Assembly: GCF_000315625.1 (NCBI RefSeq)
Contig: NW_005434584.1
Coordinates: forward strand, 1-64,000
Length of the DNA: 64,000 bases
Reading direction: 5' to 3'
Source: Guillardia theta CCMP2712
Lineage: Eukaryota > Protista > Cryptophyta
Notes under the pieces: model-generated
Databases searched by the model: none
What the model was told of the DNA's origin: nothing
The model's input: only the letters and a program-made list of their open reading frames with translations
Part shown: one piece after another, positions 3,001-39,431 of the stretch
Position numbering within the stretch: position 1 is the stretch's first letter
Layout of the letters: each line of letters starts with the position of its first letter
Translations under genes and position numbers: made by a program

Positions 3001-6000
3001 TTAGTTTGTGGATCAGACTGCTTTTGATATCATCATCCACCCTGCATTTCTTATTCGTTTCTTTCTCTAGATACCGAATCGCCGCCCTTCCCAAGATGGG
3101 TGCTGGATGGGGGAGTTGGAGGCCTCCTTTGTCCCAAGGTAGGTGAAAGATAGCGTTGCTTGTACTCTTGCTCAATCCCATAGCTCTTTTGAATGCTCTG
3201 GTCCAGAGGGTATCTAAGGTTTGTAAGTCTGACCAAGACCAGCTCACCAGTACCGCCGAGTATCTAAATATATTGACGATGCCTACCTTCACCAGGTAAT
3301 ATTTTTGGGCTGCCGAGTAAGCAGATGATTCAATCAGCTTTGTCAGTTCTTTTGTCTTCTCCAAGATGTGTTCTTTCTCTCCCCACGTGAAGGGGCAGGT
3401 GTGCGCCTTGTTGCCTCTTCCTCCTGGTCTCCACAAGCTGATCCGGATCCCTAGATATTTGAACCATTTTGTCGGTGGTAGGTTCACAAACTCCTTGTCG
3501 AAGAACTTGATGGTCTGTGTTCCTGGGATCTCCCTTCTTAGCCGATAATCAAAGCTGGTGATTTCAGATTTCTTCGTGTTCAGTTCTAATCCACTCCATC
3601 GACAGAATCGCTCTACCACTTGGACAAGCGTTTTCATCTCTCTCACTGAATGTGCTATCAGGACAAGGTCGTCTGCAAATGACAGATTATTAGGGTGTTG
3701 AGTTGCAATCTCGTCTTGTTGTTGATCGAGTTGTTTTGACAAGATGCTAAGCAGAAGATTTGTTTTTGGCGGACTTGCGGGGCTGCCTTGGGGTAATCCT
3801 CTGAGAAGTGGGATGGCTGCTGTTTCGAACCTCTCTGTCTGAATTTGCAGCGCTATCCCTTGGCTACAACTGATTGCGACGTCTACATCACACTGGTGAA
3901 AGCCATATACTTCCATGATTTTTGCAATGGATTCGACTGCCACATTGTTAAAGAAGTTTGCAAAGTCGAGGTACAGCAGGATGAGGTCGTGTTGATTACT
4001 CTGAGCCTCCTCGATGATGTTGAGTAGACGATGACCCTGCCTGATCGTCCCCCCCTCTGGTCTGAAACCTTCCTGGTTGTTAGTGAGTAGCTTATGTTTT
4101 TCAGCAGCTTTTGCCAGTCTGTGCGCTATGACTGCCTGGAAGATCCGCGTTACCGAGGAGAGGACGCATATAGGTCTTTGATTCTCCAAGACGTGACATA
4201 TCTCATTTTTTGGGAGGAGCCTAACTCTCGCGAGCATCTTTAGTGTTTGCTTGTCTCCGATCAAGGCTCGGTTGATTGTCTTGCCTATTTCCTCCTTTGC
4301 ACTGTCAGGCAGAGCTTTCAGAATCTCGTTTGAAATCAAATCCATGCCTGCTGCTTTCCGGTTGGCCAGTTTTTGAATCCATACTTGGATCTCGCCTGGC
4401 TCCAGCGGGTAAGCTATCTCTACATCCCTGGTCGGGTGTTGATTGATTTGCTCTGGGGGTTCGAAGTCCGGTGGTTTGACGGAAGTCAGTGATTGACAGC
4501 TTTTGCAGAAGAAGAGGATTGATGCTTCTTCGTTTTTCTGGCTTTTGTCATATAACGGAATCAGTCGTCCTTTTGTTTGACATTCAGCTCTTGCACAGGT
4601 TCCGTTCATGGTACATCCGTTGACTGCAAAGAAGGTTGCCGTGTGGGTTTCATCTTCTAGATCTCTTGCCAATCTCATGGGGAGGAATTGCTCGATGTTT
4701 TTGTATCCTTCCAGGCGCCACCCTCCTGGCTGTGTGATCAGTCCTCGGATGATGGGTACGATTGCGTGTGCAGGCGCCAGCGTTATGAACAGCTTTTGTG
4801 TCAGTGTTGCCAGGTTCCTCGCCCCGAGAACCTCGACGTGCAGCATGGTTTGATGTCTTGCATTCCAAAAGGTTTTGCTTGATTCTTTGGAGTTGCTCTG
4901 GAGGAATGTCTCGATTAACGGGTTCAGTTCTTGAAGATATGCTGTCTCCGGCTGTTGCAGCGCTGGCTGGAGATCTCTCCATGACGTAAGTTCGATTGTG
5001 TTTGGGTGGCACTTCTCTGGCAGTTGACTCAGCATTGGGGCTTTGGGCTTAAAGTCTGACTTCTTGCCCATTGCATTTTGAGACTCTTTACTCCCTATCG
5101 TGCCCAAGCGTCTTCTTCGTTCTTCGCATGTTTTCAGGAATATCTCTTGGTCTTGTGCTGCGCAGATCTCCTTGAATTTGGTCATATTCTCTCTTATTTC
5201 TGCATGTAAGCTCGACTCCTTGTGTGCGCGATCAATAAAGTCTGGAATTTCTGAAGCGTTTCTTAAGTCCTTGTGAAGTTGCTTGATTTTGCGTTTCAGA
5301 TCCATCTGAATTTTGGATGCATGTCTTTTCCCGCTGGAGCCTCGTAGCGGAATTTCCTTGATGGGGAGGGCTGTTGTTATCAATTCGAGAATGTCGCAAT
5401 CTTGATGTAGAGCTTGTGCCGCTTTTATCTTCTCATCAAGTGCTATTGCCCATTCCACGCCTAGTCTTCCCGATAGCTTGTCCATCTCGACCACCCTTTT
5501 CTTTCGTCGAGGGGTTGCTTCTCGATCCCTCCTTTGCGGGAGGATTTCAATCTTTGGGATGGCTTGCTTACCCTCAGCATCGAGAGAGCTCACATTCACT
5601 ACAAGTGCTCTATGGTCGACTGCGGCTCCTATGATGCAATCCTCTGCGGTCTGCGAGATTAAGCTTACTGTGCAAGATGGATGGTGTAATGCAAAGACAT
5701 GATCCAGTTTTGCTTGGTGATGACCCTGCTTGTACCATGTGGAGAAGGTGAAGTGCGTGCTGCTTCTGCTCATCTTCTCGCAAGTGACCATCTGGGATCG
5801 TCCAAGTTCGTTTAAGCCTTGTTCCATTATCCGACTCTCATGGGGATCTCTGGATGTTGTCGAGATGCATTGAAGTCGCCTCCTATGATGGTGTCGAGAT
5901 GCATTGAAGTCGCCTCCTATGATGGTGAGCTTGACACTTGGCTCCGTCTTGAGCATCTGGCTCAGCGTTAAGTGGGTGTTACAGATCCCTATCGGTTCTT

Positions 6001-6760
6001 TTTTTCCGATCTGTAAAAGTTGTATTCTTTTTTGGAGATTCTGCTCTTCCAACATGTCAGCGCGGCGGCCGAGCAGGGGGGAGGGACGAGGGAGAAGGTC
6101 CGCATGTACTAGCGTCACAAGGCGAAGATCACTCTTACCCTTTCTCCCCTCCCCTGCACCTTTCGTCATGAACACTCGGTAGCATCCCCATTCTTTCTTG
6201 ATCATCATTCGGAGATCTGCCTCCTTTCGTTTTCCCCCGACCAAAACTTCTTGAAGTAGCACGACTGTTGGTTGATATGTTTCAATCAGGTATCCTAGGA
6301 TGTGTTTCAGCACAAATTGACTGCATCCATTGACATTGTGAGAAATGATGTTGCCAGGGGCGTTGTCCTTCCTGTGCGTTTCCACCCATGCTGATTGCAC
6401 TGACCTGTCGGTGGTAGTCGTGGGTGGTTTGCTGCCTGCTGGTAGGATTTGCTCCTCCGCCCCCGTTGCCCATTGAAGGTGAGACGAGTTCCCATCTTGC
6501 ATCTTTGTTGGGCCTGGTAGCTCCTCCTCTCCCCTTGTCTCCTTGTCGTTCTTCGAGATTGGCGCTGTGTGCATTGCTTGTGGCGGAGGAGGTGGCTGGA
6601 GTGGAGAGACGGGGCATGAAGCAGGAGGTGGGGGAGGGGAGGACGTCAGGATGTCTACCTGTGCTGACCTGTCTTGTAGTTGCAGGACCGTCGCGGCTAT
6701 GAGCTTCGTTGATCCTTGTCCTCCTTGCTCCTGCTCGTCTTCCAATCTCTCCTGTAGCCA
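1..6760 (-). mobile_element. Non-LTR retrotransposon (LINE), Dualen/RandI-like, 5'-truncated by gypsy sequence; 3' UTR runs off the window start
   Basis: One long ORF with APE, RT, degenerate RNase H-like region, CCHC knuckle and C-terminal PD-(D/E)xK endonuclease motifs. The 5' end abuts gypsy integrase sequence at about 6755-6760. Confidence 0.88.
128..6760 (-). CDS. LINE polyprotein: AP endonuclease - Cys cluster - reverse transcriptase - RNase H-like - CCHC - restriction-like endonuclease
   Basis: APE motifs: IISHNVNG, VLLQEV, IGGDFNA, KLDHVF, VDHRALV (~5590-6350). RT motifs: KAAGMDLISNE, QRPICVLS, NQEGFR, LDFANFFN, GLPQGSPASP, FADDLVL, KYLGI (~3440-4400). CPHC-x7-H-x4-C (~670-735). IPDG..VLIEF..KEEKY (~350-510). 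The called ORF start at 6913 lies inside gypsy sequence and is not a real start. Confidence 0.88.
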   Translation of the reverse strand, partial: WLQERLEDEQEQGGQGSTKLIAATVLQLQDRSAQVDILTSSPPPPPASCPVSPLQPPPPPQAMHTAPISKNDKETRGEEELPGPTKMQDGNSSHLQWATGAEEQILPAGSKPPTTTTDRSVQSAWVETHRKDNAPGNIISHNVNGCSQFVLKHILGYLIETYQPTVVLLQEVLVGGKRKEADLRMMIKKEWGCYRVFMTKGAGEGRKGKSDLRLVTLVHADLLPRPSPLLGRRADMLEEQNLQKRIQLLQIGKKEPIGICNTHLTLSQMLKTEPSVKLTIIGGDFNASRHHHRRRLQCISTTSRDPHESRIMEQGLNELGRSQMVTCEKMSRSSTHFTFSTWYKQGHHQAKLDHVFALHHPSCTVSLISQTAEDCIIGAAVDHRALVVNVSSLDAEGKQAIPKIEILPQRRDREATPRRKKRVVEMDKLSGRLGVEWAIALDEKIKAAQALHQDCDILELITTALPIKEIPLRGSSGKRHASKIQMDLKRKIKQLHKDLRNASEIPDFIDRAHKESSLHAEIRENMTKFKEICAAQDQEIFLKTCEERRRRLGTIGSKESQNAMGKKSDFKPKAPMLSQLPEKCHPNTIELTSWRDLQPALQQPETAYLQELNPLIETFLQSNSKESSKTFWNARHQTMLHVEVLGARNLATLTQKLFITLAPAHAIVPIIRGLITQPGGWRLEGYKNIEQFLPMRLARDLEDETHTATFFAVNGCTMNGTCARAECQTKGRLIPLYDKSQKNEEASILFFCKSCQSLTSVKPPDFEPPEQINQHPTRDVEIAYPLEPGEIQVWIQKLANRKAAGMDLISNEILKALPDSAKEEIGKTINRALIGDKQTLKMLARVRLLPKNEICHVLENQRPICVLSSVTRIFQAVIAHRLAKAAEKHKLLTNNQEGFRPEGGTIRQGHRLLNIIEEAQSNQHDLILLYLDFANFFNNVAVESIAKIMEVYGFHQCDVDVAISCSQGIALQIQTERFETAAIPLLRGLPQGSPASPPKTNLLLSILSKQLDQQQDEIATQHPNNLSFADDLVLIAHSVREMKTLVQVVERFCRWSGLELNTKKSEITSFDYRLRREIPGTQTIKFFDKEFVNLPPTKWFKYLGIRISLWRPGGRGNKAHTCPFTWGEKEHILEKTKELTKLIESSAYSAAQKYYLVKVGIVNIFRYSAVLVSWSWSDLQTLDTLWTRAFKRAMGLSKSTSNAIFHLPWDKGGLQLPHPAPILGRAAIRYLEKETNKKCRVDDDIKSSLIHKLTSWCNQWGCQTINQLQREIRSGRLKENEAIRGPERLAIWIAEKMQTTISWEMIESKMKPGTIAILHDLEDKMISEENSLLSGENSLPTSPARQGWESFAKAWRLLPQVGFHSMTSVLPVPDTEGISLHLPIRLWPFPKQREQAEEILAQYLQANVIWAKLGLEQAGTGKRRRPAREEGKPLNKRRKGKREASPHELQPHKKLARPDQGREETNTKACTRVILRRWLQHDPTCYDEGGNQQERFCYTTSNIPFKVQGNIAIFERSQIEESKTVDPPIEWLEASLDSAPFTSATREEDGNNRRDCNQSIHLLLEIVNALDDGETEATAWWQQLEEVVSEVRQETTQPLAYEFLQHLAEITACDISTFRNWPTLHTHPQALDKKRARELHRVVVWMDKQKRFREQILDTIHVILIGWKNNIDEIPEGFEIISRVPKGAQIAYAANFWQSGNRCLMKTAEELWILVRHTLPTYLRVQLQDNILPTYEELCNRRRDQIQPCSDHQGGRHFTAAIEGDIMQGRKNRSMRVGYVLQQKEMTSGGGMKINGKCSIIRANTIAIGLLLQHVLEEGIQIKRGNQVTIMYQSTRFHRFMTNTLRMDTMRYEDELLEDLHDRLLTCMKKLEGRGIRIRLQLAKESHRNIQEAKEMAKQAKQTFASGWEKAMYDSPMEFIIAGEENPTSGFDRLKKWDYIIRKQTMVARIRAGDLTLTEKFMLEMHVGRDLLGRGFKQCEGSVTRTAIQAITFSAPTRKKLFQWGKTNSPCCPHCPDREETWGHVQLACKQFQDMIQKAHNEVMKKIKVRLQQSWRKQRVQVNSWWDTPIRIVMEAMGTSMHREGQWIPDGCCYFASIKRIVLIEFARTSEYDGVEQTSLECLKKKFQEKEEKYAPLRAEITVLLPDHEVEQATFIAGVKGSIMEREWHENFRVLRVEDTEWEGIKTAAIKQLLEVQHMLWTARRGSEST

Positions 6761-8526
6761 GGTGAGTTTTGACGTTGCGGCCATAAATAATCTCGAATGG
6801 CGCAAGGCCTGTTGAACGTTTGACGGAAGAATTGTAATGCATCTCGAAGAGGGGAAGAAATCTGTCCCAGTCATGGTTGACGCGATTGGCACAGTAGATG
6901 CGAAGAGCTTCAATCAAGACGGAGTTGAGGCGTTCAGGTCGAGCATTGCCTTGAGGATAGTAAGGCGAAGAATGCTTGATTTTGACCTGCAAGATGTCGA
7001 AAAGTTTAGTCCAAAAGGCAGAAGAGAAGATTTTTGCATTATCTGAAATGATTTCGTTGGGAAGGCCTTGGTTGGCGCAGACTTTCGAAACAAAAAGATC
7101 GGCAGCTTGTTGAGAGGTGAGAGTCTTCTTGCATGGAGACAGAAAGACACGGCCAGAAAAGTTGTCAACACAAACGAAGATCGAGTCGTAATGAGAACGA
7201 GTAGGCGGGAAGCCGGAAACAACATCGATGGAGATTGTAGCAAAACGATCAGACGGAGCTGCTTGACTGTGCGACGGTCCCATCTGTGGCTTGCGATAAG
7301 ATTTGTATTGGATGCAAGATTGACAGGAAAGGATATAACGTTCGACTTGTTGACGCATAGAGGGCCAATAAACAACAGGAACAAGAGCCAGGTATGTTCG
7401 AGAGAAGCCGCGGTGACTGTGAAGGTCATGGGCACGGTATAGAACTTCTTTGCGAACGGATTGAGGAATGCAAATGCGTTGTCGGTGAAGACTGTCTGTT
7501 AGAATCAGGAGATGATGTTCAATGTGAAAATGCTTGTACGATGGGTTGTTTTGAACTGCTTGATAGATTGTAGAAAAGTATGAACACGAGGAATATGCTT
7601 GTACGATTGCGTCGTGAAGAGATTCAACGAGAGAAGCATTATCAGCAGGAGCATCGAGAGCAAGGAGATGATGAAAATCTTGATCATCTGAATGTAGGAT
7701 TGCGTCAGCGCGTGGAGGTGCGACGTCGTCGTCGGGATATTGGCGGCTGAGAGCGTCAGGGACGACATTATCGGTACCTTTCACGTGCGCGATCTCGACG
7801 ATAGAGAATTCACTGAGAGTTTCTAACCAGCGGCGAAGACGACCTTTGAGATCCTTTTGAGTTTGAAAGTACGTGAGAGCCTTGTGATCAGTACGAAGGA
7901 TGATGGGCTTGCCAAGCAGATAAAATTGGAAGTGAAGAAGCACGTCTTTGATGGCCAAAAGTTCGCGCTCAGTGGTTTGATAATTTCTTTCTGCATCAGT
8001 AAATAGGCGACTGTAGAATCCAATGACTTTCTCTTTGTTGGCAGCGTCGTACTGAAGAAGAACACCGCCGAGAGCTGTGTTTGAGGCATCGGTGTGAACT
8101 TCTGTTCTAAGCGCTGGATCAAAGTGAGAGAGAATTGGGGAGGAGGTTAACCGGTGTTTGAGAAGATCGAAGGCTTGCTGGCACTCGGGAGTCCATTGAA
8201 AGACAACATTCTTACGAAGAAGAGCATGAAGAGGAGCAGCAATGTGGGCATAGTTGCGAATAAAGCGACGGTAATATCCGGAGAGCCCAAGAAATATTTT
8301 GATCTCCTTTGCGTTGCTGGGTGGTGGCCAGTCAAGGATCGCGCTGGTCTTACTGGATTGAGTCGATATGCCATCAGCAGAGATTTGATGACCGAGGAAC
8401 TCGACACTATCTTGAAAGAGCTTGACTTTTGATTTCTTGAGGTAAACTTGATTCTCGCGGCAGCGCAGAAGAACGCGACGAAGAGTGTTGAGGTGTTGAT
8501 CAAACGTGCCGAAATCAAGGATGAGC
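6755..8526 (-). mobile_element. Ty3/gypsy pol, C-terminal part (RT thumb, RNase H, integrase)
   Basis: VEFLGHQIS, FLGLSGYYRRFI, HTDASNTALGGVL, NYQTTERELLAI, TDHKAL, NVVPDALSR, HHCC zinc motif, and the DDE core (ISIDVV, IISDN, GNARPERLN). No LTR seen. Confidence 0.92.
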
Positions 8527-9716
8527 ACTAACTTAGACCTAGCATCGGGTACATCTGTCGCGTGATGTATTGCAATGTTTACAGAGTCAACCGCCGCATC
8601 TCCCTGCAGCGTGCAGGCCCGCGGAATTGGTCTGTGGCAGTTTGTGAATCTACCAGACTTCAGGTATTTGTTGATAAGAGTTTGATCTCCAAACTCCGGT
8701 CGTTCCTGCAGTGTACAGTTAGCGACGAGTTCCATCATGTTCCTCATGGCTTTGCTGTTCCTTATGATAAAAAAGCCACTGTTGTAATCCATTTCTCCCC
8801 TTTCCGCCATGCCAAAATAATCTAAGTGAGCAATCCTTGCATATTCGAAGAAATCGAGAGTGATACTGGTGTTGAAAAACTGGATGTCACCATCGCACAA
8901 GAGCAAATAGTCGATTGTCGGATTTTCTGTCATGAACGTAACCAGATTGCGAATCTTTTGAGTCACAGAGAAATACCAAGACTCAGTCCTGAATCCAAAT
9001 TCTCTAAACCTTGCCAGATCGATTTCAAAAACGTGCACCACAAATTCCTGTCTTCCTGTGATTGATCGCATAAACCCCTGCTCGAACAGAGTTCTAAAAT
9101 TTTCTGAGAGGTTTACGACGACATGCTCCATGCGTTTCAAAACATTTTTCTTTGTCAGAGCACCAGTACTGCTCCTAGGTGATGGAATCTGCCTCCCATC
9201 ATCCGATCGCCTCTGCCTCCCATCATCTGATCGACTCTGCCTCCCATCATCCGATCGCCTCTGCCTCCCATCATCTGATCGCCTCTGCCTCCCATCATCC
9301 GATCGCCTCTGCCTCCCATCATCCGATCGCCTCTGCCTCCCATCATCCGATCGCCTCTGCCTCCCATCATCCGATCGCCTCTGCCTCCCATCATCCGATC
9401 GCCTCTGCCTCCCATCATCCGATCGACCCTGCCTCCCATCATCCGATCGCCTCTGCCTCCCATCATCCGATCGACTCTGCCTCCCATCATCCGATCGACT
9501 CTGCCTCCCATCATCCGATCGACTCTGCCTCCCATCATCCGATCGTCTCTGCCTCCCATCATCTGATCGAGTTTGGATCGAAACACGTGATCTTGCTGTA
9601 ACATTTGAAGTGTTGCGCAAGAAACTCATGTAAAGAAAGATCAAAAGGAAACTGCCTTGCAAACAAAGACATCGAAGAGAGCGTGAAGGAAGATGACCCA
9701 TTACTAGATCCATCAT
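8527..9716 (-). CDS. Type II membrane glycosyltransferase, nucleotide-diphospho-sugar transferase (GT77-like), 3'-truncated and fused in frame to gypsy pol
   Basis: N-terminal TM (FLLIFLYMSFL), repeat stem, then LLLCDGDIQFF (DxD), YNSGFFIIR, GDQTLIN, IHHA. The missing C-terminus is visible at 12541-12657. Confidence 0.75.
9188..9570 (-). repeat. 24-bp coding minisatellite (RSDDGRQ[R/S/G]), about 16 units, in the GT stem
   Basis: Tandem units of cgatcggatgatgggaggcagagg with minor variants. Confidence 0.95.
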
Positions 9717-10108
9717 TCCATGCGCACTCTGATTGGCAACGTTTACTCAACAGCAGCCAGCTCTGCAGGCGATAGGTAGACCTGACCAATCCGCCCCAGA
9801 GAAAAGACTCCCTATCAAGGAGAGGCAGCGAAAAAGTAGGCTTCCTACACTAGGCAAGCTGATTGTCCTCGTACCGGTTTTGCATTCAGCGCTGGCTATA
9901 AAACTCTTTTACACTGTCAGGGACGCCGTTTTCAACAGGGAAAATTTGTAGCCATTCTCTGGAATATTTGCCTGAGTATTCAAATTACTACTACAAGCAA
10001 CTTTCAAAACAATCGACGGCTACCCCTACCCATCATGCTTGCTAGCTGGCAACCTCTATGAACGGGTGGGCTAGGCCTCCCAGCTGCAGCGCAAGCGATA
10101 ACAGAACC

Positions 10109-11048
10109 ATGGTCGCAATGCTGCGCATGCTTATCATTTCCTGCTGTTATGGACTATCATTCGGTGGATACAGCCCTGCTGCATCTACAAATATAACTGA
10201 GATACTATCTCGAACTGCCGTTCAATATCGACATTGCTTGAACCCGTATTCAAGTTGGGATTCGTTGTATCAAAATCTTGCAGCAGGCCCAATTCAAGAC
10301 GGGTGGGCTTGGCCAACTGATGGAGATGAGCGTCTATGAAGTCTGGGTATGCCTGGAAAATCATCCATGTGCCTTACACCCGGTGGACACCTACTTTTGT
10401 TGGGTGTTCAACGAGATGACACAATCATGGGTCCCATTTGGGGAGAACGTAGATCTTAAGCTTGTACATGTGATCCCTCGCCCTTCGGAATGTGTAGGGT
10501 ACGTGAACATATCACATTGCGCGGTGAACATTTCGATGACGGCAGACAATGCATTCGAATTGTTCGTCAACGGTGTGTACTTGGGATATGAAGATAACTG
10601 CAACTTCTGCCATACCTGGAAGTCTCAATACCTCGTATATGACTACACTGTGAACATCGATGTCATCGATGGTGAGAGAGAGATGGTGGTAGCAGCAAAG
10701 ATTATAGATTGGCCTGGTGGCCTGACTGGCCTTATTGGAACCTTTGGAGGTGTTCCCACCAGCGCATCGGCAAACTGGAAGTGTGCGACATTTCCAGGAG
10801 ATGTTCCCCCGAGGGGATGGACTGCAAGATCTTTCAACGACTCGCAATGGTCACAAGCAGTGCAAACTTTCCCAGATAGTCGATTTTTGCAACGCCCGTT
10901 GGACAAACAAGCATCCTGGATTGCTTCCCCAACGTACAATCTGAGGTACTTCTGTCGCGGAGTTATCAAGAATCCAGAGGCCGTTTGCACTCAGAATGTG
11001 AAGCAGAAAGTCCAGCCATACGAAATCCAGCTGAATGATCTGGTTTGA
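10109..11048 (+). CDS. Secreted lectin-like protein with a galactose-binding-like/CBM67-type domain; frame break near 10320-10340
   Basis: Signal-like N-terminus MVAMLRMLIISCCYG in one frame. Downstream frame has ISMTADNAFELFVNGVYLG, VVAAKIID, GLIG, WKC and WTARSFNDSQWSQA. Confidence 0.6.
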
Positions 11049-11551
11049 TTGCTTTTGGGGCTCAACGCACTTTCGAAGCAATAAACAGAAGTCTCTGTAA
11101 GAATACGATTCTTTTGTGATCTTGTATACAAAGCAAAGCCGTCACTTTATTGAACCCCACCTAAAATCTCTAGTCTTTACAACTTATTCCATCCAGGCTA
11201 TGATACTTCGGATAAGCTTTCCCCTCTGGATCTCCTGTATGAAATGTAGAGAAGTCTTCCACTCTGTTCCAAAGCTTCATTGTCTGGCCGATCTATTTGA
11301 CTTCCAGCTCGTACAGGAACTGTTCTTGGAAGCATCTTTATCTTGCTGAACATGGGAATACACTGGTAATATCACGAAAGAGAGAGTAATCCATTCTTGA
11401 GACCTAGCATCGGGTACATCTGCCGAATGGAAGATTGCGAAACTGATATTTGCCAACTTGGTGATGATGGGCGACATATTTGCGATGATCAGGGGCAACA
11501 GGAATTTGCCAAAAACCGCGGAGAGATCGGAGAGCTGAAATCCAAAGTTTG

Positions 11552-11666
11552 NNNNNNNNNNNNNNNNNNNNNNNNNNNNNNNNNNNNNNNNNNNNNNNNN
11601 NNNNNNNNNNNNNNNNNNNNNNNNNNNNNNNNNNNNNNNNNNNNNNNNNNNNNNNNNNNNNNNNNN
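11552..11666. other. Assembly gap (N run)
   Basis: Run of N. Confidence 1.
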
Positions 11667-11940
11667 GTTTTCGCAAGTCAGTGCAAAGACGATAGCTGGA
11701 GGGATCTGTAGGAGATCGAGGGTCGTTTTTGCGGCGACTGTAAAGCACGGGGAAGCCAAAGGGGCTGTTGGAAGGTTGGATGATGTTGCGAGATAACAAA
11801 TATTCCAACGTCTTTTGAAGTTCTTGTTCGAGGAAAAGCGGGAGCCGATAGGGGCGTAGACTGACAGGTTTAGCATCAGGTAAAATGTCAATGGTGGCCT
11901 GAAATTCACGAGAAATGTTATAATTGGCGGGCAGATCATC

Positions 11941-12040
11941 NNNNNNNNNNNNNNNNNNNNNNNNNNNNNNNNNNNNNNNNNNNNNNNNNNNNNNNNNNNN
12001 NNNNNNNNNNNNNNNNNNNNNNNNNNNNNNNNNNNNNNNN
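11941..12040. other. Assembly gap (100 N)
   Basis: Run of N. Confidence 1.
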
Positions 12041-12326
12041 CGGAGAGAAAGAACTGGCTGACGGTGGCGTGGAGGATGAATCAACTTGGAGAACGCAAAG
12101 AAACCAATCGTCCTCATCGTTGTCTTGTTGTTGAGAAGCAAAAACATCGGTCAATGACAGGAAAGTAACTTGCGCAAAGGATTGGGGAGCTGTAAGAGAA
12201 TTAAGCGGAACCATTTCACATGTCGGAAGACGCACGAGTTGTTGCTTGTGGGAAGATTCAATCCATACTTCACGGGTTCGGGCACGAAAAACAAGTCCAT
12301 AGCGTTGCTTTTCCGGCCGGGCGCTC

Positions 12327-12657
12327 GAACATGATGGAACTCGTCGCTAACTGTACACTGCAGGAACGACCGGAGTTTGGAGATCAAACTCTTATCAACA
12401 AATACCTGAAGTCTGGTAGATTCACAAACCGCCACAGACCAATTCCGCGGGCCTGCACGCTGCAGGGAGATGCGGCGGTTGACTCTGTAAACATTGCAAT
12501 ACATCACGCGACAGATGTACCCGATGCTAGGTCTAAGTTAGTTCAGATCCAAGCTGTGCGTGGACGATATGAGCGTGCCAACGTTCAGCAAGATAAAGAT
12601 GCTTCCAAGAACAGTTCCTGTACGAGCTGGAAGTCAAATAGATCGGCCAGACAATGA
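12327..12657 (+). pseudogene. 3' fragment of the GT77-like gene, including its true C-terminus and stop
   Basis: NMMELVANC...ARSKLV is near-identical to 8527-8742 (one C/R difference), then continues QIQAVRG...RSARQ*. Confidence 0.85.
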
Positions 12658-12885
12658 AGCTTTGGAACAGAGTGGAAGACTTCTCTACATTTCATACAGG
12701 AGATCCAGAGGGGAAAGCTTATCCGAAGTATCATAGCCTGGATGGAATAAGTTGTAAAGACTAGAGATTTTAGGTGGGGTTCAATAAAGTGACGGCTTTG
12801 CTTTGTATACAAGATCACAAAAGAATCGTATTCTTACAGAGACTTCTGTTTATTGCTTCGAAAGTGCGTTGAGCCCCAAAAGCAA

Positions 12886-13825
12886 TCAAACCAGATCATT
12901 CAGCTGGATTTCGTATGGCTGGACTTTCTGCTTCACATTCTGAGTGCAAACGGCCTCTGGATTCTTGATAACTCCGCGACAGAAGTACCTCAGATTGTAC
13001 GTTGGGGAAGCAATCCAGGATGCTTGTTTGTCCAACGGGCGTTGCAAAAATCGACTATCTGGGAAAGTTTGCACTGCTTGTGACCATTGCGAGTCGTTGA
13101 AAGATCTTGCAGTCCATCCCCTCGGGGGAACATCTCCTGGAAATGTCGCACACTTCCAGTTTGCCGATGCGCTGGTGGGAACACCTCCAAAGGTTCCAAT
13201 AAGGCCAGTCAGGCCACCAGGCCAATCTATAATCTTTGCTGCTACCACCATCTCTCTCTCACCATCGATGACATCGATGTTCACAGTGTAGTCATATACG
13301 AGGTATTGAGACTTCCAGGTATGGCAGAAGTTGCAGTTATCTTCATATCCCAAGTACACACCGTTGACGAACAATTCGAATGCATTGTCTGCCGTCATCG
13401 AAATGTTCACCGCGCAATGTGATATGTTCACGTACCCTACACATTCCGAAGGGCGAGGGATCACATGTACAAGCTTAAGATCTACGTTCTCCCCAAATGG
13501 GACCCATGATTGTGTCATCTCGTTGAACACCCAACAAAAGTAGGTGTCCACCGGGTGTAAGGCACATGGATGATTTTCCAGGCATACCCAGACTTCATAG
13601 ACGCTCATCTCCATCAGTTGGCCAAGCCCACCCGTCTTGAATTGGGCCTGCTGCAAGATTTTGATACAACGAATCCCAACTTGAATACGGGTTCAAGCAA
13701 TGTCGATATTGAACGGCAGTTCGAGATAGTATCTCAGTTATATTTGTAGATGCAGCAGGGCTGTATCCACCGAATGATAGTCCATAACAGCAGGAAATGA
13801 TAAGCATGCGCAGCATTGCGACCAT
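12886..13825 (-). CDS. Second copy of the lectin-like gene, with the same frame break
   Basis: Translations identical to 10109-11048. Confidence 0.6.
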
Positions 13826-14217
13826 GGTTCTGTTATCGCTTGCGCTGCAGCTGGGAGGCCTAGCCCACCCGTTCATAGAGGTTGCCAGCTAGCAAGCATG
13901 ATGGGTAGGGGTAGCCGTCGATTGTTTTGAAAGTTGCTTGTAGTAGTAATTTGAATACTCAGGCAAATATTCCAGAGAATGGCTACAAATTTTCCCTGTT
14001 GAAAACGGCGTCCCTGACAGTGTAAAAGAGTTTTATAGCCAGCGCTGAATTCAAAACCGGTACGAGGACAATCAGCTTGCCTAGTGTAGGAAGCCTACTT
14101 TTTCGCTGCCTCTCCTTGATAGGGAGTCTTTTCTCTGGGGCGGATTGGTCAGGTCTACCTATCGCCTGCAGAGCTGGCTGCTGTTGAGTAAACGTTGCCA
14201 ATCAGAGTGCGCATGGA

Positions 14218-14620
14218 ATGATGGATCTAGTAATGGGTCATCTTCCTTCACGCTCTCTTCGATGTCTTTGTTTGCAAGGCAGTTTCCTTTTGATCTTTCT
14301 TTACATGAGTTTCTTGCGAACACAATCTTTGCAGGTCATGGCTTCACCCCGTGCAGTTGAGCGATGGATGACCAAGGAGGCATTTCATCTCAACACTTCA
14401 AATGTTACAGCAAGATCACGTGTTTCGATCCAAACTCGATCAGATGATGGGAGGCAGAGGCGATCGGATGATGGGAGGCAGAGGCGATCGGATGATGGGA
14501 GGCAGAGGCGATCGGATGATGGGAGGCAGAGTCGATCGGATGATGGGAGGCAGAGTCGATCGGATGATGGGAGGCAGGGTCGATCGGATGATGGGAGGCA
14601 GAGGCGATCGGATGATGGGA
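14218..14620 (+). pseudogene. 5' fragment of the GT77-like gene (TM + 8 minisatellite units) fused to unrelated sequence
   Basis: Same N-terminus as the 9716 gene; homology stops inside the repeat at about 14620. Confidence 0.8.
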
Positions 14621-14621
14621 G

Positions 14622-14745
14622 ATCTCTTACCGCCAGCTCTTCTATCCTTGGGGTTGATGTGACACCAACGCCAACGCCAACACCAACACCAACCAGAGCC
14701 GAAAAACAGTATCTGGAACGAAAACATCTCTTGTTTGCCACATCA
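14622..14745 (+). repeat. Dispersed duplicate of 42713-42912 with an internal deletion
   Basis: Shared atctcttaccgccagctcttctatccttggggttgatgtgacaccaacg...catctcttgtttgccacat. Confidence 0.9.
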
Positions 14746-14832
14746 GCCTTCATCTTGGTCCTGATTCAGCCTCCTTCAAAATGTATAAACTGAGACCAGT
14801 CAAGTCAAGACGAGAAGATGACAGGAGCTATC

Positions 14833-16646
14833 TGTCAGAGCTCATAGGAACCGAGCCCGAGTCAGACAAAGGTTTACTGGAAAGAAAGGACAGTTGGTCT
14901 CGTACTCGTGTGAAACTGACTTCTCTTGGATACCCCAGGATACTCTACCCCAGTGTGAATCTGCTGAAAAGGACCCCTCTGGAGGTCTTTGTTGCAGGAA
15001 CCGTGCACCCGTGGTGGCTTACAAGCTGAAGAGGACGGGAGAGTCTTGTGGAGTACAACCCGTTGGAAGCAGCCTGCTGGCATGCGAGGATGGGGTTCTC
15101 TACCCTGCGAGAGAGCAAGGTTTCTGCTCGAAGGGCTGACGGGATGTTCAACATCTAGAGAAGAAAGCTTGTCAACTTCCAAAGAGAAATCACCCCTACT
15201 TTCCTCAGCCAAGAGACGGGTACTCCTGTCTCCTTCCTCGAAGGTATACAAGGATCATTCTCGTCAGAACTAAGTGGTCTTCTTCCCCTTTCGTGTGTGA
15301 GCCACGTCTATTTATGCCACATCAGTGTGTGTGGGTTTGTTTTGTTTGCTGTGTGAAAATAACGAGAGATAGATCTCCTTCAGTCACGCTGCTTTCCTCT
15401 TAGTAGAGAAATTCCAGCGCAAGTTCTTGTTGAGCTTCGCTGAAGGTCAATCCTGTAAAGCTTGGTGCTGTGAACACAAAGCCTGGGGATAAATGGTGAT
15501 CCGATTGGGTTGAAACCATCTCTTGAGAGTATCACTGACAGCTGAGGTATCGCCAAAGAGTAAGTCCCAGTTGGCATGGTCGTCGAGGGGAAATTTCTTT
15601 GGCGACAAGCAACCATTGCCCAAGGACGAGATGATGTCGAAGATCACATCCTTGATTTCGAGATGATGTCGAAGATCGTCAACGCCGCAGGAGGATACTA
15701 TTTCAGTCTTGAGCCTGTTGACCCTAAGCAGCATGTGACTCTGTTCACGCCGAAGTCTTGGCACCACTAGCTCCTTGGCATGTTGGAATGGCATTTGCCA
15801 TGATGATATTCGGTGCCAGTCGCTTCTTACGCGATATGTGGTCTTTGTGAGGGTTGAGGCTCTTGTTTCACGTTAGTGTATGCGGGTTCTCGCCGCATTA
15901 TCTCGTGGAGAGCTAAATGATCGATATCACCGCACAAACCAGATATACAGTAGAAAATCTATTTTGTTTTTCTGGCTTAAGAAAAGTAAAAAATAATCAA
16001 GAAATGCTAATCTACTCTATAGAACTGAACGATCCACCTCGTCAGATGAGAAGTTTGAAGGTAAACAGAGCTTCTGCAATCCTGCCTAACACCGACCTAT
16101 CGCTGCTGCGAAACTTTGTAAACATGCCTTTTTCTTTCAAAAATTCGATCTGTTCACCGTGCTTCAGGATGTGATCTGATTTGATCAAATCAGAGTGTAC
16201 CTTACGCACACTTTCTGTTAAATCGTCCATTCAGGTCTTGTTCCAGATGAATTCGGCTGATCGACTAGTCGAATGGAGAAGCATGATACAACGAGCAGGA
16301 GATTACAACAAACTGCGTGATAAAGCAGGAGGGAACCATCTTGATACATCTTTGCACATGTCGGGCAGGATCATGGTGCCCTCCTGGGCGACTCATGGGA
16401 AGGCCGTCTCGCACCGCACGGGGATCACGTCCTCCTTAGGTTGATGATCTATACGAACATGCCCGATCTCATCATGAAATCCACGCACTCTGGGTGGAGC
16501 AGGGCCTGCTAATGCTTCCGGTTCTCCTTGCAGACCTGCTTGAAGTCGGGGCAGTGGATGATGCTGTTCATGCTGTGCACCCCTGTAGAAATCCCCGCCT
16601 GGCACCCTGAGGTCGAACATGTGCTTCAAGGATAAGACCCTGAGGC
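14833..16646 (+). repeat. Segmental duplicate A of an unidentified block with short ORFs (copies at 34795-36771 and 39160-39431)
   Basis: Near-identical ORF translations, e.g. 15917/36043, 16181/36307 and 14989/34857. Confidence 0.92.
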
Positions 16647-17157
16647 TGGTGGACAGCAAATTTATTTGTGCCGATGCTCTAGGCTTTGAAAGAATAAGTT
16701 GCATGAAGCATGAGATGAGAACGACTTCTATATGTAAAAAGATTGTCTGATATCGTAATCCGTCAAATCACAATCGAAAAAAAACACTTGACAAACCTCA
16801 CACAATAGACTGACATTTGAGAGCTTTGACAGAAGATTTGAAGCCAGAAGTTGTTCCACAAACAAATTTGCTTTTGGGAAACAGATTTTTCGTGTAACTT
16901 GGACCAATCTTTAACGACTATGTCCAGAAGGCATCAATTTCCCTTGGATTCAACACGTTCTGAACCAGAAGTCTCAATTATCAACTCTTGTCCACCTCCA
17001 GGCATGCTTTGTGTTTGTTACCCGAAATCTTACAACATTGGAAATGTTTCCAGCTGAAAAGCTTGCACAAGAGACTACAAGTCAACCTTAATATGAATCG
17101 AAGGGATGGGGAGGGAGATGCAATAGCGTTCAAAACAACGAAAGGAACGCAAGATGA

Positions 17158-18363
17158 TCACGTACACGTTTCGCTGAGGCGAAAAGAGGAGTTGAGTGAC
17201 GATTCGTCTCCCCAGCAAGGCCACAATTCTGATCGTTGACACTCCATTGTCGCGTCAAATGCCTCAGATTGGCGAAAGCCAACATGAGCGTCCATCTCTT
17301 GGTAACAGATCGGGAAAGGTCTGAAAGGAGTCCCAAAGGATGAGATTGCCCCAATGTGAGACATGAGGTTGAATCTGTAGACGAAATATGATCTATCTTG
17401 TCTTCTGATTGTGAATGTTTTGTGACCTTTGGCTGTCTTCCCAAGAAACCACTCGACTATGTTATGGTCAGACGGCTTGTTCCAAATGTTGAGAAGAAGG
17501 TAAATCATGAGATTTGGAATGTCATCATTGTTTATCAAGATTCCATTTAGTCCGTAGGAGACCCGGAGTGCCTTCCATTTCCAGGCTGCATCGTACAATC
17601 TTTTGAGAATACATTTCAAGATCTTCAGTCCTCCGGTACAGAAAACAAAATCATCTTCCATCAGCAAGATGTGCCGTGACTGACCGCACGACCTGGCCAA
17701 AGATGCGCAAAGGTTCAGCACTTGCCTGAGAAGGAGCTTCTTTATCAATTCAGTGCGGTTCGACGTCTTGATGTCGTCGACGGACTCATCAAGAGTTTCT
17801 GAAATCACCTCTATGGAGGGGAACTTTAATTTCAAAGAATTGAGTTGCCGAGTGAAAGTGCGATTTTGCGCATCATTGTTTGCCAGAACGACGTGGTTGT
17901 GTTGGTTTGTTGAAGTCATCTCTTGAAAGAGTCTGTAGACAACCTGGTCTAAGTAAAACGCGTGTTGACGAGAGGCTGTTGTTATCAGAACTGTAAGGTT
18001 TGGTCGGTTGGGATCGTTTCTCTCAGTAGCGCTGGAGCAGCAAACCTGCATAGCTTTCTCGATCCATTTGACACTCTGTTGTACGTAAGATTCGTTCCAA
18101 TCTTTCAAAACTTGTTGGTTCAACCATGAGATGTCTGAGATATTTGTTTGGCAGAAGCTGACATTCAACAGATCGCCCTCAATCAAGGGGTCTTCCTCTA
18201 GTATTTGTGACTGAGTTTGAGCTTGAGAAAGAGCATCCCTGCGTCTGAGAGTACCATATCGACTCATCACTACCACGTTAGTAAGTGAGTACAAGCAGAG
18301 GAATACGAAAGCTGCCCTGACCAGCGAGGCGCTTCCATATTGTCTCGTCAAGATTTCCTGCAT
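17158..18363 (-). CDS. Type II membrane glycosyltransferase, GT54/MGAT4-like (GlcNAc transferase-type)
   Basis: TM AAFVFLCLYSLTNVVVM; LTVLITTASR, ILLMEDDFVFC, LRVSYGLNGILI, PSDH, YRFNLMSHIGAISSF. Confidence 0.72.
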   Translation of the reverse strand: MQEILTRQYGSASLVRAAFVFLCLYSLTNVVVMSRYGTLRRRDALSQAQTQSQILEEDPLIEGDLLNVSFCQTNISDISWLNQQVLKDWNESYVQQSVKWIEKAMQVCCSSATERNDPNRPNLTVLITTASRQHAFYLDQVVYRLFQEMTSTNQHNHVVLANNDAQNRTFTRQLNSLKLKFPSIEVISETLDESVDDIKTSNRTELIKKLLLRQVLNLCASLARSCGQSRHILLMEDDFVFCTGGLKILKCILKRLYDAAWKWKALRVSYGLNGILINNDDIPNLMIYLLLNIWNKPSDHNIVEWFLGKTAKGHKTFTIRRQDRSYFVYRFNLMSHIGAISSFGTPFRPFPICYQEMDAHVGFRQSEAFDATMECQRSELWPCWGDESSLNSSFRLSETCT

Positions 18364-18537
18364 GAGAGTAAATAAAAACAAGCGTTTTTTAAAAATGAAA
18401 GTTTGACCATACTGACTTTTTTTTGTTTTTTTCTTTCTAAGTCAAAAAGGAAAAGAAGGCAAAACTAAGTTGAATAAATGCTTTGGTCCCTGGGCCGTCG
18501 CTTGCGTGGTTGGAGTGCCGGTTTTCGCTGCCTCCTT

Positions 18538-18632
18538 CGTTTCCTAGTATTTTATTGAGGCGGGTTTGTTGGCTCTATCCTCCCCCTCCTTTGTTTGCTT
18601 CGGTTTGTCCTTCTTTTTCAGTCAAATAAATT
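18538..18632 (+). repeat. ~95-bp dispersed repeat, copy 1 (upstream of the GT54-like gene)
   Basis: ttcctagtatttttattgaggcgggtttgt...ccttctttttcagtcaa recurs at 20929-21022 with a few substitutions. Confidence 0.9.
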
Positions 18633-18919
18633 AAGTCAGTGTGTGACGTCGGACTGACCCCCGGTGCCCGCCAGGCCGGGCCCGGGCTGCGGCCCGCCGC
18701 GTGACTTAAACGCAGATTCCGATCAGTCTCTTACTTCGAGTCAGTTCTAACAGCTAGTAGAATTATTTTCTACAAGTCACTGAGTTATGTTGAGGGAAAA
18801 CAAGCCAACAGCCAACGGCCACAGGTAGGGAACAACGCCGGTTGTCGCTATGCTGCTGCTTCAGGGTTGGAAGAGATCACGCCGATGATGCAAGGCCGTT
18901 CAACGGTTGAATGGGCCCG

Positions 18920-19005
18920 GGGAAGGGAGTATATGCGAGCACGGGCGGCAGCGATCGCGCTGCCGCTTGAAGGAATGGCATGCGGGGGGCCCGGGGGGGG
19001 GAGTA
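18920..19005 (+). pseudogene. Remnant of the 18-aa Cys/His repeat family
   Basis: GSICEHGRQRSRC, the same unit as in the 28134 and 31915 ORFs. Confidence 0.7.
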
Positions 19006-19134
19006 CTCGGAGACTTGCATGACAGGTCGAAGCGAAGAAGCATGTTTCAAAGTGTTTCACCATCAATTCCAAAGATCAGTACCACAGCTTTATCAAAGTT
19101 CAGTATTACAGCTGTATGAGATTCAAGCAAACTT

Positions 19135-20868
19135 TTAGAGGTTGCGCTCGAACTTCATAAGATGAAGCTCAACAGTCTTGATCGTACTGTTGACGTGTCG
19201 CAACACTGACTCGGGATGAGTCTGGAAGGGCTGAGTTAACATTCCTACAACTCTCTTCTTCATGTTGGCCTTGTCGACCTTCTGGTCCTCCCAGGCCTCA
19301 AGTTTCTTGTACAAGAACTCCAGAGGCCTTGCCCAACCGTAATGTGCCAGCGCGGGAGAGGTCACGAAGAAAACCAGAGCTCCAGTGGACCTCGAGCGAA
19401 ATCCTTCTGCAGGGAGCCCATGCGCCTCATCAGTCCAAGATCCCTTGGCTTGTAGGTCGTCACTCAACACAATCACTCTGTCGTGCCCATATGGTTGGTC
19501 TAGTCGGAATCTGAACACTCGTGATTTCATTTGTCTTGTCAGGGCCTGCGAGGCTTCTTGTCGAACAAGGTGAAGCCAGTCTAGCGAGGACTCAATGTCT
19601 CCCTGAACTAGCTCATACTGAGGCACCCACAATTTCTGGAAGGGCTTGTTTGTACAACGAACAGCTTCCATCATCTCTCTTGCATTGGCGTCATAAAAGA
19701 CATCATCTGCATCGATTTTCATGATATGTGCGCAAGATAAAGATCGGGCAACTTGAAGGGCAGCATTGCGAGCAATTGATGTGTGGATCGAGCAATTCAA
19801 CGTCAGAATGAAGAGCTTTTTCGAAACCAGATAGTCACTGAAAGTTTGACGTAGTAGGTTGATGGTAGTGTCCTTCGACCCAGTATCAGCCACTATGTAA
19901 TGATCTACATGCTCAATTAGCGCACCAATCGTGAAGACTATGGTATTGATCTCGTCCTTGCAAATGGTGATTGCCGCTATCTTACGTTTTGCATGTGTAC
20001 ATTTCTGCCCTTTTCCCATCAGTCCGCACGTTTGGATGATTTGTCCTATAGGAATAATCTTTCCCACGTGATACAAAGAAACATGCTGCAGAATCTTTGA
20101 TAGTGCAGGTGGTTTTCCAATCGTAGACCAGAGTCCTGTTAGAACATCGCTGCTTGAAAGTGAATAGCTTGACACTGCTTTTCTGCTAGGACTGCGGAGC
20201 AAAATGCTGTCAAAGACTGAGCATACGTAACTTCTCTCCTGCAATTTTGATTGATCGCTCATCGTTTGAGTAGTGTTAAGGCTGGTCTTGCGTCGCAGAC
20301 ACACTGTAGTCGAGTGCAGCACATGCTTGCAAGTAAGATATAGTTTGTATGCAATATCCGAATCAAGCCAATGATACAAATACCTGTCATAACTTGCAAA
20401 CCCTTGTACAACAGTCCTGTCACAACCACCATTGGCGTACTGACCATCATTGACATGAATATGTTTCATTCTCACTCCACTCCTTGCTAAAAGGTCACGA
20501 ACAAACGTATGACGGTGGTGTGAGCCGCCATATCCTCCGTACCACAGGATAGGGCCAGGATCTGTCATGTAACATCGTCCGGTCTCAGGGTCATACACAT
20601 CCGTACACGCGCACCTCGAAATATGTTGCTCTTCGACAAGGGTTGGTCTCCTCAACATGGTGAGAGCAGTTGGCTCCTCAACTTTCCGAGTCTGGTCAGG
20701 GAAGGATCGTAGACTGCCATGAAAGCGCATAGAGAACAAGACGTAGAGCGCAAACATGAGCTTCCATCGGAACTTGGAAATGGCCAGGATCCTATGCTTT
20801 CGTTGCTTATGTGGAAGGGACAAACAGGAGCAAGTTACGAGGTGTTGAAAACAACAATGACCTTCCAC
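19135..20868 (-). CDS. Membrane-anchored GT2-family glycosyltransferase with a possible N-terminal sulfotransferase-like domain; start uncertain
   Basis: TM LMFALYVLFSM. GT2: ITICKDE, YIVADTGSKDTT, ARNAAL, MKIDADD. N-terminal half has ILLRSPSRKAVSSY, resembling the sulfotransferase 3'-PB motif. Confidence 0.7.
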   Translation of the reverse strand: MEGHCCFQHLVTCSCLSLPHKQRKHRILAISKFRWKLMFALYVLFSMRFHGSLRSFPDQTRKVEEPTALTMLRRPTLVEEQHISRCACTDVYDPETGRCYMTDPGPILWYGGYGGSHHRHTFVRDLLARSGVRMKHIHVNDGQYANGGCDRTVVQGFASYDRYLYHWLDSDIAYKLYLTCKHVLHSTTVCLRRKTSLNTTQTMSDQSKLQERSYVCSVFDSILLRSPSRKAVSSYSLSSSDVLTGLWSTIGKPPALSKILQHVSLYHVGKIIPIGQIIQTCGLMGKGQKCTHAKRKIAAITICKDEINTIVFTIGALIEHVDHYIVADTGSKDTTINLLRQTFSDYLVSKKLFILTLNCSIHTSIARNAALQVARSLSCAHIMKIDADDVFYDANAREMMEAVRCTNKPFQKLWVPQYELVQGDIESSLDWLHLVRQEASQALTRQMKSRVFRFRLDQPYGHDRVIVLSDDLQAKGSWTDEAHGLPAEGFRSRSTGALVFFVTSPALAHYGWARPLEFLYKKLEAWEDQKVDKANMKKRVVGMLTQPFQTHPESVLRHVNSTIKTVELHLMKFERNL

Positions 20869-39159: not shown

Positions 39160-39431
39160 TGTCAGAGCTCATAGGAACCGAGCCCGAGTCAGACAAAGGT
39201 TTACTGGAAAGAAAGGACAGTTGGTCTCGTACTCGTGTGTGAAACTGACTTCTCTTGGATACCCCAGGATACTCTACCCCAGTGTGAATCTGCTGAAAAG
39301 GACCCCTCTGGAGGTCTTTGTTGCAGGAACCGTGCACCCGTGGTGGCGTACAAGCTGAAGAGGACGGGAGAGTCTTGTGGAGTACAACCCGTTGGAAGCA
39401 GCCTGCTGGCATGCGAGGACGGGGTTCTCTA
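39160..39431 (+). repeat. Segmental duplicate C (matches about 14833-15101)
   Basis: tgtcagagctcataggaaccgagcccgagtc...ggggttctcta. Confidence 0.9.

Follow-up and report, generated by a model that had tools for sequence, protein, structure and literature searches.

We analyzed the first 64 kb of contig C90 of the draft genome assembly of the cryptophyte Guillardia theta (87.1 Mb in 669 contigs); this whole stretch is referred to below as the window. It contains two inverted, differently permuted copies of a unit of approximately 2.87 to 2.9 kb, which consists of a gene for a predicted GT-A glycosyltransferase (GT) and a lectin-like gene, and the left copy interrupts the reverse transcriptase (RT) of a Ty3/gypsy retrotransposon. 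We tentatively favor, at somewhat less than an even chance, the reading that this locus arose by an inversion between the RT and one GT gene of a local tandem array, that we see it as the flip isomer, and that nothing in it is mobile now. The rearrangement is real; it is young and complex but ordinary, and it lies in a transposon-rich stretch of a draft assembly.

Two copies of the unit in a long inverted repeat

A repeat finder detected an inverted repeat with arms of 1741 nucleotides (nt) each, at positions 9616-11356 and 12578-14318. By exact comparison, these long arms differ by a single mismatch (9883/14051) and share a perfect core of 1468 nt (9884-11351 and 12583-14050). A second inverted block, 8527-8742 and 12327-12542, has one mismatch in 216 nt. 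Both methods bear out the initial annotation, made from the sequence without database searches, in its description of two inverted and differently permuted copies of the unit. Read in the sense of GT, the left copy runs from the GT 3′ end through the antisense lectin-like gene and the intergenic region into the 5′ part of GT, as far as the residues ..ARSKLV. The right copy, read in the same sense, runs from the middle and 3′ end of GT through the antisense lectin-like gene and the intergenic region into the 5′ part of GT, where it stops within an array of 24-nt repeats.

Each copy shows both possible adjacencies of the two genes, tail to tail (GT 3′ end to lectin 3′ end) and head to head (lectin 5′ end to GT 5′ end), in agreement with the initial annotation. 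Because both adjacencies occur in each copy, the source must have been either a circle or a tandem arrangement of more than one unit. The left copy had also been described as opening and closing within about 40 bp in the GT gene, and the distance between its two ends is 40 nt exactly; these 40 nt (12543-12582) are kept in the right copy.

The right copy had been taken for the same unit, opened elsewhere. The two copies are distinct sequences, approximately 99.9% alike, which differ by two single-nucleotide polymorphisms (SNPs), a 72-nt insertion or deletion (indel), and the length of their 24-nt arrays. The 72-nt segment (14319-14390, with AACAC at both borders) is present only in the right copy. 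The tandem arrays occupy 9181-9592 in the left copy (approximately 17 units) versus 14414-14621 in the right copy (approximately 8.7 units). The order of repeat variants within the arrays also differs between the copies, so the array either evolves faster than its flanks or is poorly assembled. The GT body between the repeats and position 8742 is found in the left copy and is missing from the right. Because the right copy holds the 40 nt and the left copy holds the GT body, each missing from its partner, neither copy can have come from its partner.

A whole-assembly search found no further copy of the unit anywhere in the 87-Mb assembly, and no paralogue of GT was found in the genome. Because the unit is confined to the window and GT has no paralogue, we take this locus to be the native place of the unit. 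The proposal that the unit was captured more than once is not borne out by these data: since the 40 nt missing from the left copy are present in the right one, and since the assembly has no further copy of the unit, the right copy is more plausibly what remains of the native locus than a second capture. Two further candidate explanations for the pair of copies were rejected. That the arms represent one locus assembled twice is ruled out by the two SNPs, the indel, the differing repeat arrays, and the differing flanks on both sides. That the left copy is a processed retro-copy is contradicted by the 72-nt indel and the boundary between repeats and GT body, neither of which has GT..AG borders, and by the inclusion of intergenic DNA.

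Reciprocal junctions between GT and a gypsy reverse transcriptase

As a reference for the sequences that flank the left copy, we used L012, an intact gypsy element of the same family on contig C114 with identical 171-bp long terminal repeats (LTRs). All four gypsy pieces in the window (G2, G1a, G1b, and G1c, Table 1) share one strand and keep the order that they have in L012. The Pfam domains on 6285-8525 occur in the order RT_RNaseH_2, RT_RNaseH, Integrase_H2C2, and rve, which is the order of Ty3/gypsy pol, and colinearity with L012 places the N-terminal part of the RT at 11352-12304. The flanking fragments are those of a Ty3/gypsy LTR retrotransposon; the copy is dead, with its YIDD motif lost, and the family assignment stands. 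On its right, the copy is cut off at L012 position 4270, so that gag, the 5′ LTR, and some of the protease region are missing. On its left, it is cut by a non-LTR retrotransposon, and the match to L012 ends at 6756. No LTR of this gypsy family was found within positions 1-20000 of the window.

Intact gypsy copies read through ..FPYIDDLLILDFG.. at the break site. Relative to them, the Y-I-D-D-L codons, exactly 15 nt, are missing from the gypsy copy in the window, and the unit stands there instead. The earlier observation that the left copy lies within one gypsy RT whose YxDD motif is missing is therefore confirmed, and the comparison with intact copies sets the loss at 15 nt. At junction J1 (8526/8527), GT passes after ..ARSKLV into gypsy at L012 position 5211, with 0 to 1 nt of microhomology. 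At junction J2 (11351/11352), gypsy passes at L012 position 5195 into GT at a point 40 nt further downstream, with an imperfect CC.A.G match. Both junctions join GT and gypsy sense to sense. GT of the left copy is in frame with gypsy piece G2, which gives a fusion open reading frame (ORF) of 1144 amino acids (aa) on the minus strand at 6282-9716. Because J1 and J2 are reciprocal, with 15 nt lost in the RT and 40 nt lost in GT, each partner was broken a single time, with an exchange of ends. This reciprocity is the strongest argument for the reality of both junctions.

The ends of the right copy are of a different kind. At its inner end, gypsy sequence reaches L012 position 4270 and is followed by a fragment of a terminal inverted repeat (TIR) transposon, after which GT begins in mid-gene. 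The initial annotation needs correction here: a 30-nt end of this unrelated TIR transposon (12297-12326) stands between the right copy and gypsy. At its outer end, the right copy breaks off inside the repeat array and continues in frame into 211 nt of unique sequence.

We considered whether the assembly misleads beyond the matter of orientation, either through a wrong join at J2 or at the gaps, which would bring together gypsy pieces from different copies, or through one locus having been assembled twice. Both J2 and the gypsy/TIR junction are close to contig ends, at distances of 200 nt and approximately 260-285 nt, respectively; the stretch past J2 looks like a mixed consensus, and contig B is only 274 nt long. 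The gypsy family has 6 to 8 copies at 97 to 100% identity, which makes reads ambiguous, and the continuity of the pieces across the gaps as one fragment holds only so far. On the other hand, J2 is reciprocal, within 15 and 40 nt, to the clean junction J1 deep in its contig, which is beyond what a chance chimera or mis-overlap would produce. The arms differ in their SNPs, indel, repeat arrays, and flanks, as described above, and the flanks of the gaps are colinear with the intact L012. The run of 115 N stands for exactly 115 nt of L012, and the run of 100 N stands for 75 nt. The initial annotation had itself named mis-joins around the N gaps as the case that would overturn it; neither GT/gypsy junction lies on a gap, and the gap flanks follow L012. 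We consider an assembly artifact of this kind improbable.

A 23-nt GT patch within the gypsy sequence

Positions 11400-11422, within gypsy piece G1a, form a 23-nt patch that is identical to the GT sequence just before J1. This 23-mer is absent from the other gypsy copies that we fetched. The patch is in exact register with the inner flank of the right arm: among shifts of up to 30 nt in either direction, only shift 0 gives a run of more than 6 nt. Outside the patch, the in-register identity is 56 of 177 positions, versus approximately 25% at two control junctions. The 200 nt around the patch lie at a contig end and contain six single-base indels, including two +1/-1 pairs; the other gypsy pieces are 98.7 to 100% identical and gap-free. 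The patch is most likely a mixing, in the consensus, of reads from the two arms. Reads of the right arm, identical to the left arm up to the repeat boundary, would have been piled into the consensus of the left-arm flank. A palindrome-guided template switch would also predict the exact register, yet it would leave the indels unexplained. A templated insertion by polymerase theta was dropped as a candidate for the patch on the register test (shift 0) and the six surrounding single-base indels.

The patch also bears on a broader explanation, according to which one replicative, multi-step template switch made the whole patchwork, with the 23-nt patch and the 30-nt TIR fragment as templated fillers. 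Such a switch could resemble break-induced replication mediated by microhomology (MMBIR) or fork stalling and template switching (FoSTeS), or it could be end joining mediated by polymerase theta (TMEJ). The locus has four novel junctions within 8 kb, with 0 to 6 nt of microhomology, two short foreign stretches at or near junctions, and a 72-nt deletion between AACAC repeats, all of which suit this explanation. Templated insertions of such size have been described for TMEJ and MMBIR (PMC7165422, PMC8421209). However, free switching does not predict that the patch is in register with the other arm, nor does it predict the surrounding single-base indels, some in +1/-1 pairs, which are typical of a poor consensus. 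The TIR fragment begins exactly at the terminus of its element and can be explained as a genuine insertion with subsequent truncation. In our judgment, a template switch of this scope has little probability.

A proposed inversion in a local tandem array

In the history that we favor, a small tandem array of GT and lectin-like units, probably at least 1.8 units long, would have stood beside a young gypsy copy that was already truncated and faced the opposite direction. One double-strand break would have hit the RT at the YIDD codons, and a second would have hit a GT copy near its 3′ end. End joining in the wrong orientation, with the loss of 15 nt and 40 nt, would then have produced an inversion, which would yield two sense-to-sense GT/gypsy junctions and a near-perfect inverted repeat of 1.7 kb around a 1.2-kb spacer. 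The assembled order would be the flip isomer of this inversion, whether because the arms recombined in vivo or because the assembler chose this orientation.

Flipping the 1231-nt spacer (11352-12582) leaves the k-mer content of the sequence unchanged up to k=1000. Because the k-mers are identical up to this length, the flip isomer is compatible with all reads shorter than the 1468-nt core. Undoing one inversion in the flip isomer, by coordinates only, restores a colinear gypsy copy from L012 position 6981 to 4270 on the minus strand, followed by the TIR fragment, a colinear array, and the unique flank. The restored array reads GT from its middle to its end, lectin-like gene, full GT, lectin-like gene, and GT start. 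A single gypsy copy supplies both sides of the junctions, its pieces being colinear with L012 across both gaps. Only in the flip isomer does the stretch from one junction to the other run in the opposite direction to its flanks. A single inversion, with minor losses at both breaks, would account for J1, J2, the inverted repeat, the closeness of the parts, and why the left copy is nearly one unit long, so that no circle is required.

Several points weigh against this history. The deposited assembly shows the other isomer, and should its mate-pair evidence be sound, this history takes one flip more. The assembled order contains no stretch that exceeds one unit, which makes the tandem array an inference. 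The outer ends of the array, at the TIR fragment (12297-12326) and at the join of repeats and unique sequence (14621), need further events that the inversion leaves unexplained. This history also presumes reads shorter than the 1468-nt core, this being a Sanger-era assembly of the Joint Genome Institute (JGI). The sequence itself shows the junctions and their reciprocity, the equivalence of the isomers, and the register of the patch; we infer the ancestral array, the order of events, and the isomer that is present in the cell.

A second history takes the topology as it was actually assembled. A circle of approximately 2.87 kb, or a unit-length fragment, would have popped out of the tandem array, been cut once near the GT 3′ end with the loss of 40 nt, and been joined, the other way round, to the ends of a break at the YIDD codons of the gypsy copy 1 kb away, with the right copy as the remnant of the array. 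The left copy is 40 nt short of a full unit, which is what one cut in a monomer circle would leave, and the 15-nt loss without target-site duplication fits end joining. Circularly permuted insertions are an accepted signature of circular intermediates (Durkin et al. 2012, doi 10.1038/nature10757, as cited in PMC12235870). The route through a circle takes as many steps as the inversion and gives the assembled order directly. We rate it below the inversion because a circle without an origin would have to re-integrate beside its source, within approximately 1 kb. In addition, the flip isomer has equal sequence content and requires no circle, and we found no independent trace of circles or of further insertions in the assembly, which shows one insertion rather than two captures. 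Excision and re-insertion of a circle is possible, if on the unlikely side.

With the GT reading frame as reference, the left copy is permuted; the assembly contains no linear source locus, and in the flip isomer the insertion disappears altogether. If the assembled order is nonetheless right, the left copy could be a monomer extrachromosomal circular DNA (eccDNA) from the array, re-integrated in permuted and inverted form at the catalytic site of the RT, where it would have left an in-frame GT-RT-RNaseH-integrase fusion ORF. We regard this version of events as doubtful. The initial annotation derived the unit from a circle or a tandem array. The need for more than one unit or a circle stands, given the two adjacencies in each copy; the circle itself is not secured, as a plain inversion fits.

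The sense of GT at both junctions also invites comparison with a retrovirus-like transduction, in which the gypsy RT would have switched to a read-through GT transcript and back, followed by integration of the chimeric cDNA. GT has the same sense as gypsy and is in frame at J1, and aberrant copies occur elsewhere in the family, showing breakpoints between protease and RT as well as LTRs in inverted orientation. However, the template would need to be a read-through RNA across a tandem array, since the insert includes intergenic DNA and the antisense lectin-like gene. The locus has no LTRs, no target-site duplication, and no second copy, and the right copy is antisense to gypsy. We consider transduction very improbable. 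Because the insert carries intergenic DNA and an antisense gene and lacks LTRs and a target duplication, a role of the retrotransposon's own machinery is not supported. The suggestion that the locus offers a route for mobilizing glycan genes fares no better: no LTRs lie within 20 kb, the catalytic YIDD is lost, both ends of the gypsy copy are missing, and the unit is found in none of the other family copies.

The GT and lectin-like genes

From its N terminus, the GT protein has a hydrophobic anchor, then RSDDGRQx repeats that form the stem, and then the catalytic domain; the 24-nt coding repeat of the stem encodes RSDDGRQ followed by R, S, or G. An exhaustive search found 123 homologues (best E=3.5e-34). 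PF03407 is matched by 30 of the 32 aligned homologues, and the GT of the window itself scores E=0.006 against it, short of the Pfam cut-off. Residues D96 and D98 of the DxD motif are invariant in the alignment of homologues. The structure predicted with AlphaFold2 (AF2) has a predicted local distance difference test score (pLDDT) of 92, and the best Foldseek matches of this model in the PDB are GT-A transferases, namely BoGT6a, PBCV-1 A64R, glycogenin, and LARGE1. The GT label holds: the protein is a predicted GT-A nucleotide-diphospho-sugar transferase, PF03407-like, having a GT-A fold with DxD. Word-index searches for homologues of GT and of the lectin-like protein returned only the window's own protein, and so turned up neither a transcript nor a second, independent assembly of the locus. 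In the fusion ORF that spans J1, the anchor, the repeats, and the whole GT catalytic domain lead into the C-terminal part of the gypsy RT, RNase H, and integrase, behind the upstream region of GT itself.

The lectin-like gene has a frameshift near position 10300 that is common to both copies; its paralogues on contigs C117 and C1 are continuous there. The frameshift may indicate a pseudogene, or it may be a shared consensus error in a CCC run. No Pfam match was found for the lectin-like protein. A profile built from this protein and the two G. theta paralogues has hits, at E=3e-8, among PDB chains whose depositors called them 'Lectin' (6T0Q, 6T1D, and 6KBJ), with single matched stretches reaching an E of only 0.007-0.02 each. 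The language-model and structure neighbors of the protein (ESM Atlas, TM 0.52-0.55) suggest a rhamnosidase-N-like beta-sandwich. An AF2 model based on three sequences had a pLDDT of 33 and was not used. The lectin label is weaker than the GT label, and we describe the product as a putative carbohydrate-binding beta-sandwich. The first approximately 60 residues of the second lectin ORF (10278-10470; ..FKTGGLG..EVWVC..HPCAL..FCW..) form a Cys-containing module, which recurs in approximately 50 long open frames throughout the genome and has no Pfam match.

Neighboring mobile elements

Other copies of the gypsy family are rearranged as well. In L011, L031 (C13), and L029 (C49), the internal sequence ends at element position 3130, 3358, or 3443, in the protease-RT region, and what follows the breakpoint is an inverted segment or an LTR, the latter in inverted orientation in some cases. 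The rearranged region in the window looks typical for this genome, not exceptional.

To the left of gypsy, the non-LTR retrotransposon ORF combines an APE-type endonuclease with RVT_1. Its 5′ end meets the gypsy integrase region at approximately 6756, and the contig begins inside its 3′ end. The TIR fragment between gypsy and the right copy overlaps gypsy by 6 nt (TCCATA). In three of four full copies of the TIR transposon (among L033-L037), the terminus is preceded by TC, and gypsy at the join also reads ..GTCCATA. The idea that the unit was cargo of this transposon was rejected: the TIR motif occurs only once in the window, and the other copies differ after the first 30 nt.

Beyond the unique sequence, a multi-copy LTR-like repeat begins at 14833, and approximately 50 genomic copies begin at 14829-14833. 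The approximately 50 copies of this repeat are approximately 79% identical. Three pieces at 14833-16578, 34795-36704, and 39160-39431 match at 97-99.5% and lie approximately 20 kb apart.

Table 1. Features of the rearranged locus, in window coordinates, with matches to the intact gypsy element L012 where applicable
Feature	Position	Strand	Remarks
Non-LTR retrotransposon ORF	128-6913	minus	2261 aa; Pfam RVT_1 6.9e-28, Exo_endo_phos 5e-4
Gypsy G2 (RT C-terminal part, RNase H, integrase)	6756-8526	minus	L012 6981-5210/5211; 98.7% identity over 1772 nt, no gaps
GT ORF, left copy	8526-9716	minus	Predicted hydrophobic N-terminal anchor, ~17 x 24-nt repeats (9181-9592), GT-A catalytic domain
Left unit copy	8527-11351	minus	GT 3′ end 11351-11277, lectin-like gene 10058-11048 on plus strand, intergenic, GT 5′ part 9716-8527
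Lectin-like gene, left copy	10058-11048	plus	Predicted secreted; two frames, 10058-10339 and 10278-11048
Gypsy G1a	11352-11551	minus	11354-11551 matches L012 5195-4995; 91.7%, six single-base indels, at contig end
115 N, then G1b, then 100 N	11552-12040	minus	Flanks colinear with L012
Gypsy G1b	11667-11940	minus	L012 4879-4606; 99.3%; ~99% to several copies
Gypsy G1c	12041-12304	minus	12041-12301 matches L012 4530-4270; 99.2%; 99-100% to copies on C49 and C13
Terminal 30 nt of multi-copy TIR transposon	12297-12326	plus	Starts CATAGCGTTG; 100% identical to ends of at least 11 copies on other contigs
Right unit copy	12327-14621	plus	GT middle and 3′ end 12327-12657, lectin-like gene 13876-12886 on minus strand, intergenic, GT 5′ part 14218-14621
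Lectin-like gene, right copy	12886-13876	minus	Same frameshift as left copy
Unique sequence	14622-14832	plus	In frame with right GT 5′ ORF 14218-14793; no other genome match for 14600-14832

Comparison with known systems

Stray fragments such as Ty1 cDNA or organelle DNA are captured as filler DNA at double-strand breaks in yeast. The locus resembles such captures in having a foreign fragment at a break, no target-site duplication, and a small deletion. It differs in that filler DNA is usually short or comes from abundant extrachromosomal DNA, whereas here a whole gene pair is involved, at exactly unit length. LTR retrotransposons also capture host genes; in maize Bs1, for example, the captured sequence is derived from mRNA, lies between the LTRs, and is propagated. 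As in captures of the Bs1 type, host coding sequence lies inside a retrotransposon, in sense and in frame. Unlike in those captures, an intergenic region and an antisense gene are present here, there are no LTRs, and the locus is single copy.

The closest likeness to the history that we favor is a two-break inversion by end joining, with which the locus shares reciprocal junctions, small losses, little or no microhomology, long near-identical inverted arms, and two isomers. It departs from a plain inversion in that its arms come from a tandem gene array, so that the flipped isomer mimics the insertion of a permuted cassette. Flip-flop isomers between inverted repeats are known in plastids (PMC5430533); flipping in this nucleus is putative. 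In cattle color-sidedness at KIT, the ends of the insert are reported to be adjacent in the source and the order circularly permuted (Durkin et al. 2012, doi 10.1038/nature10757), as they also appear in the assembled order here. In cattle, the linear source reportedly persists and the insert is on another chromosome, whereas here the assembly contains no linear source, the only other copy is 1 kb away, and an inversion fits equally.

If the left copy did come from a circle, the locus would be a rare footprint, at base level, of eccDNA re-integration in a protist, here a cryptophyte. The main value of the finding is cautionary: a tandem array that has been inverted and then flipped looks identical to a permuted cassette inserted in a transposon. 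A mixed-read consensus beside a repeat boundary can likewise mimic a templated insertion, and an in-register comparison with the other copy of the repeat reveals it. Where long inverted repeats are present, permutation alone is not evidence of a circle.

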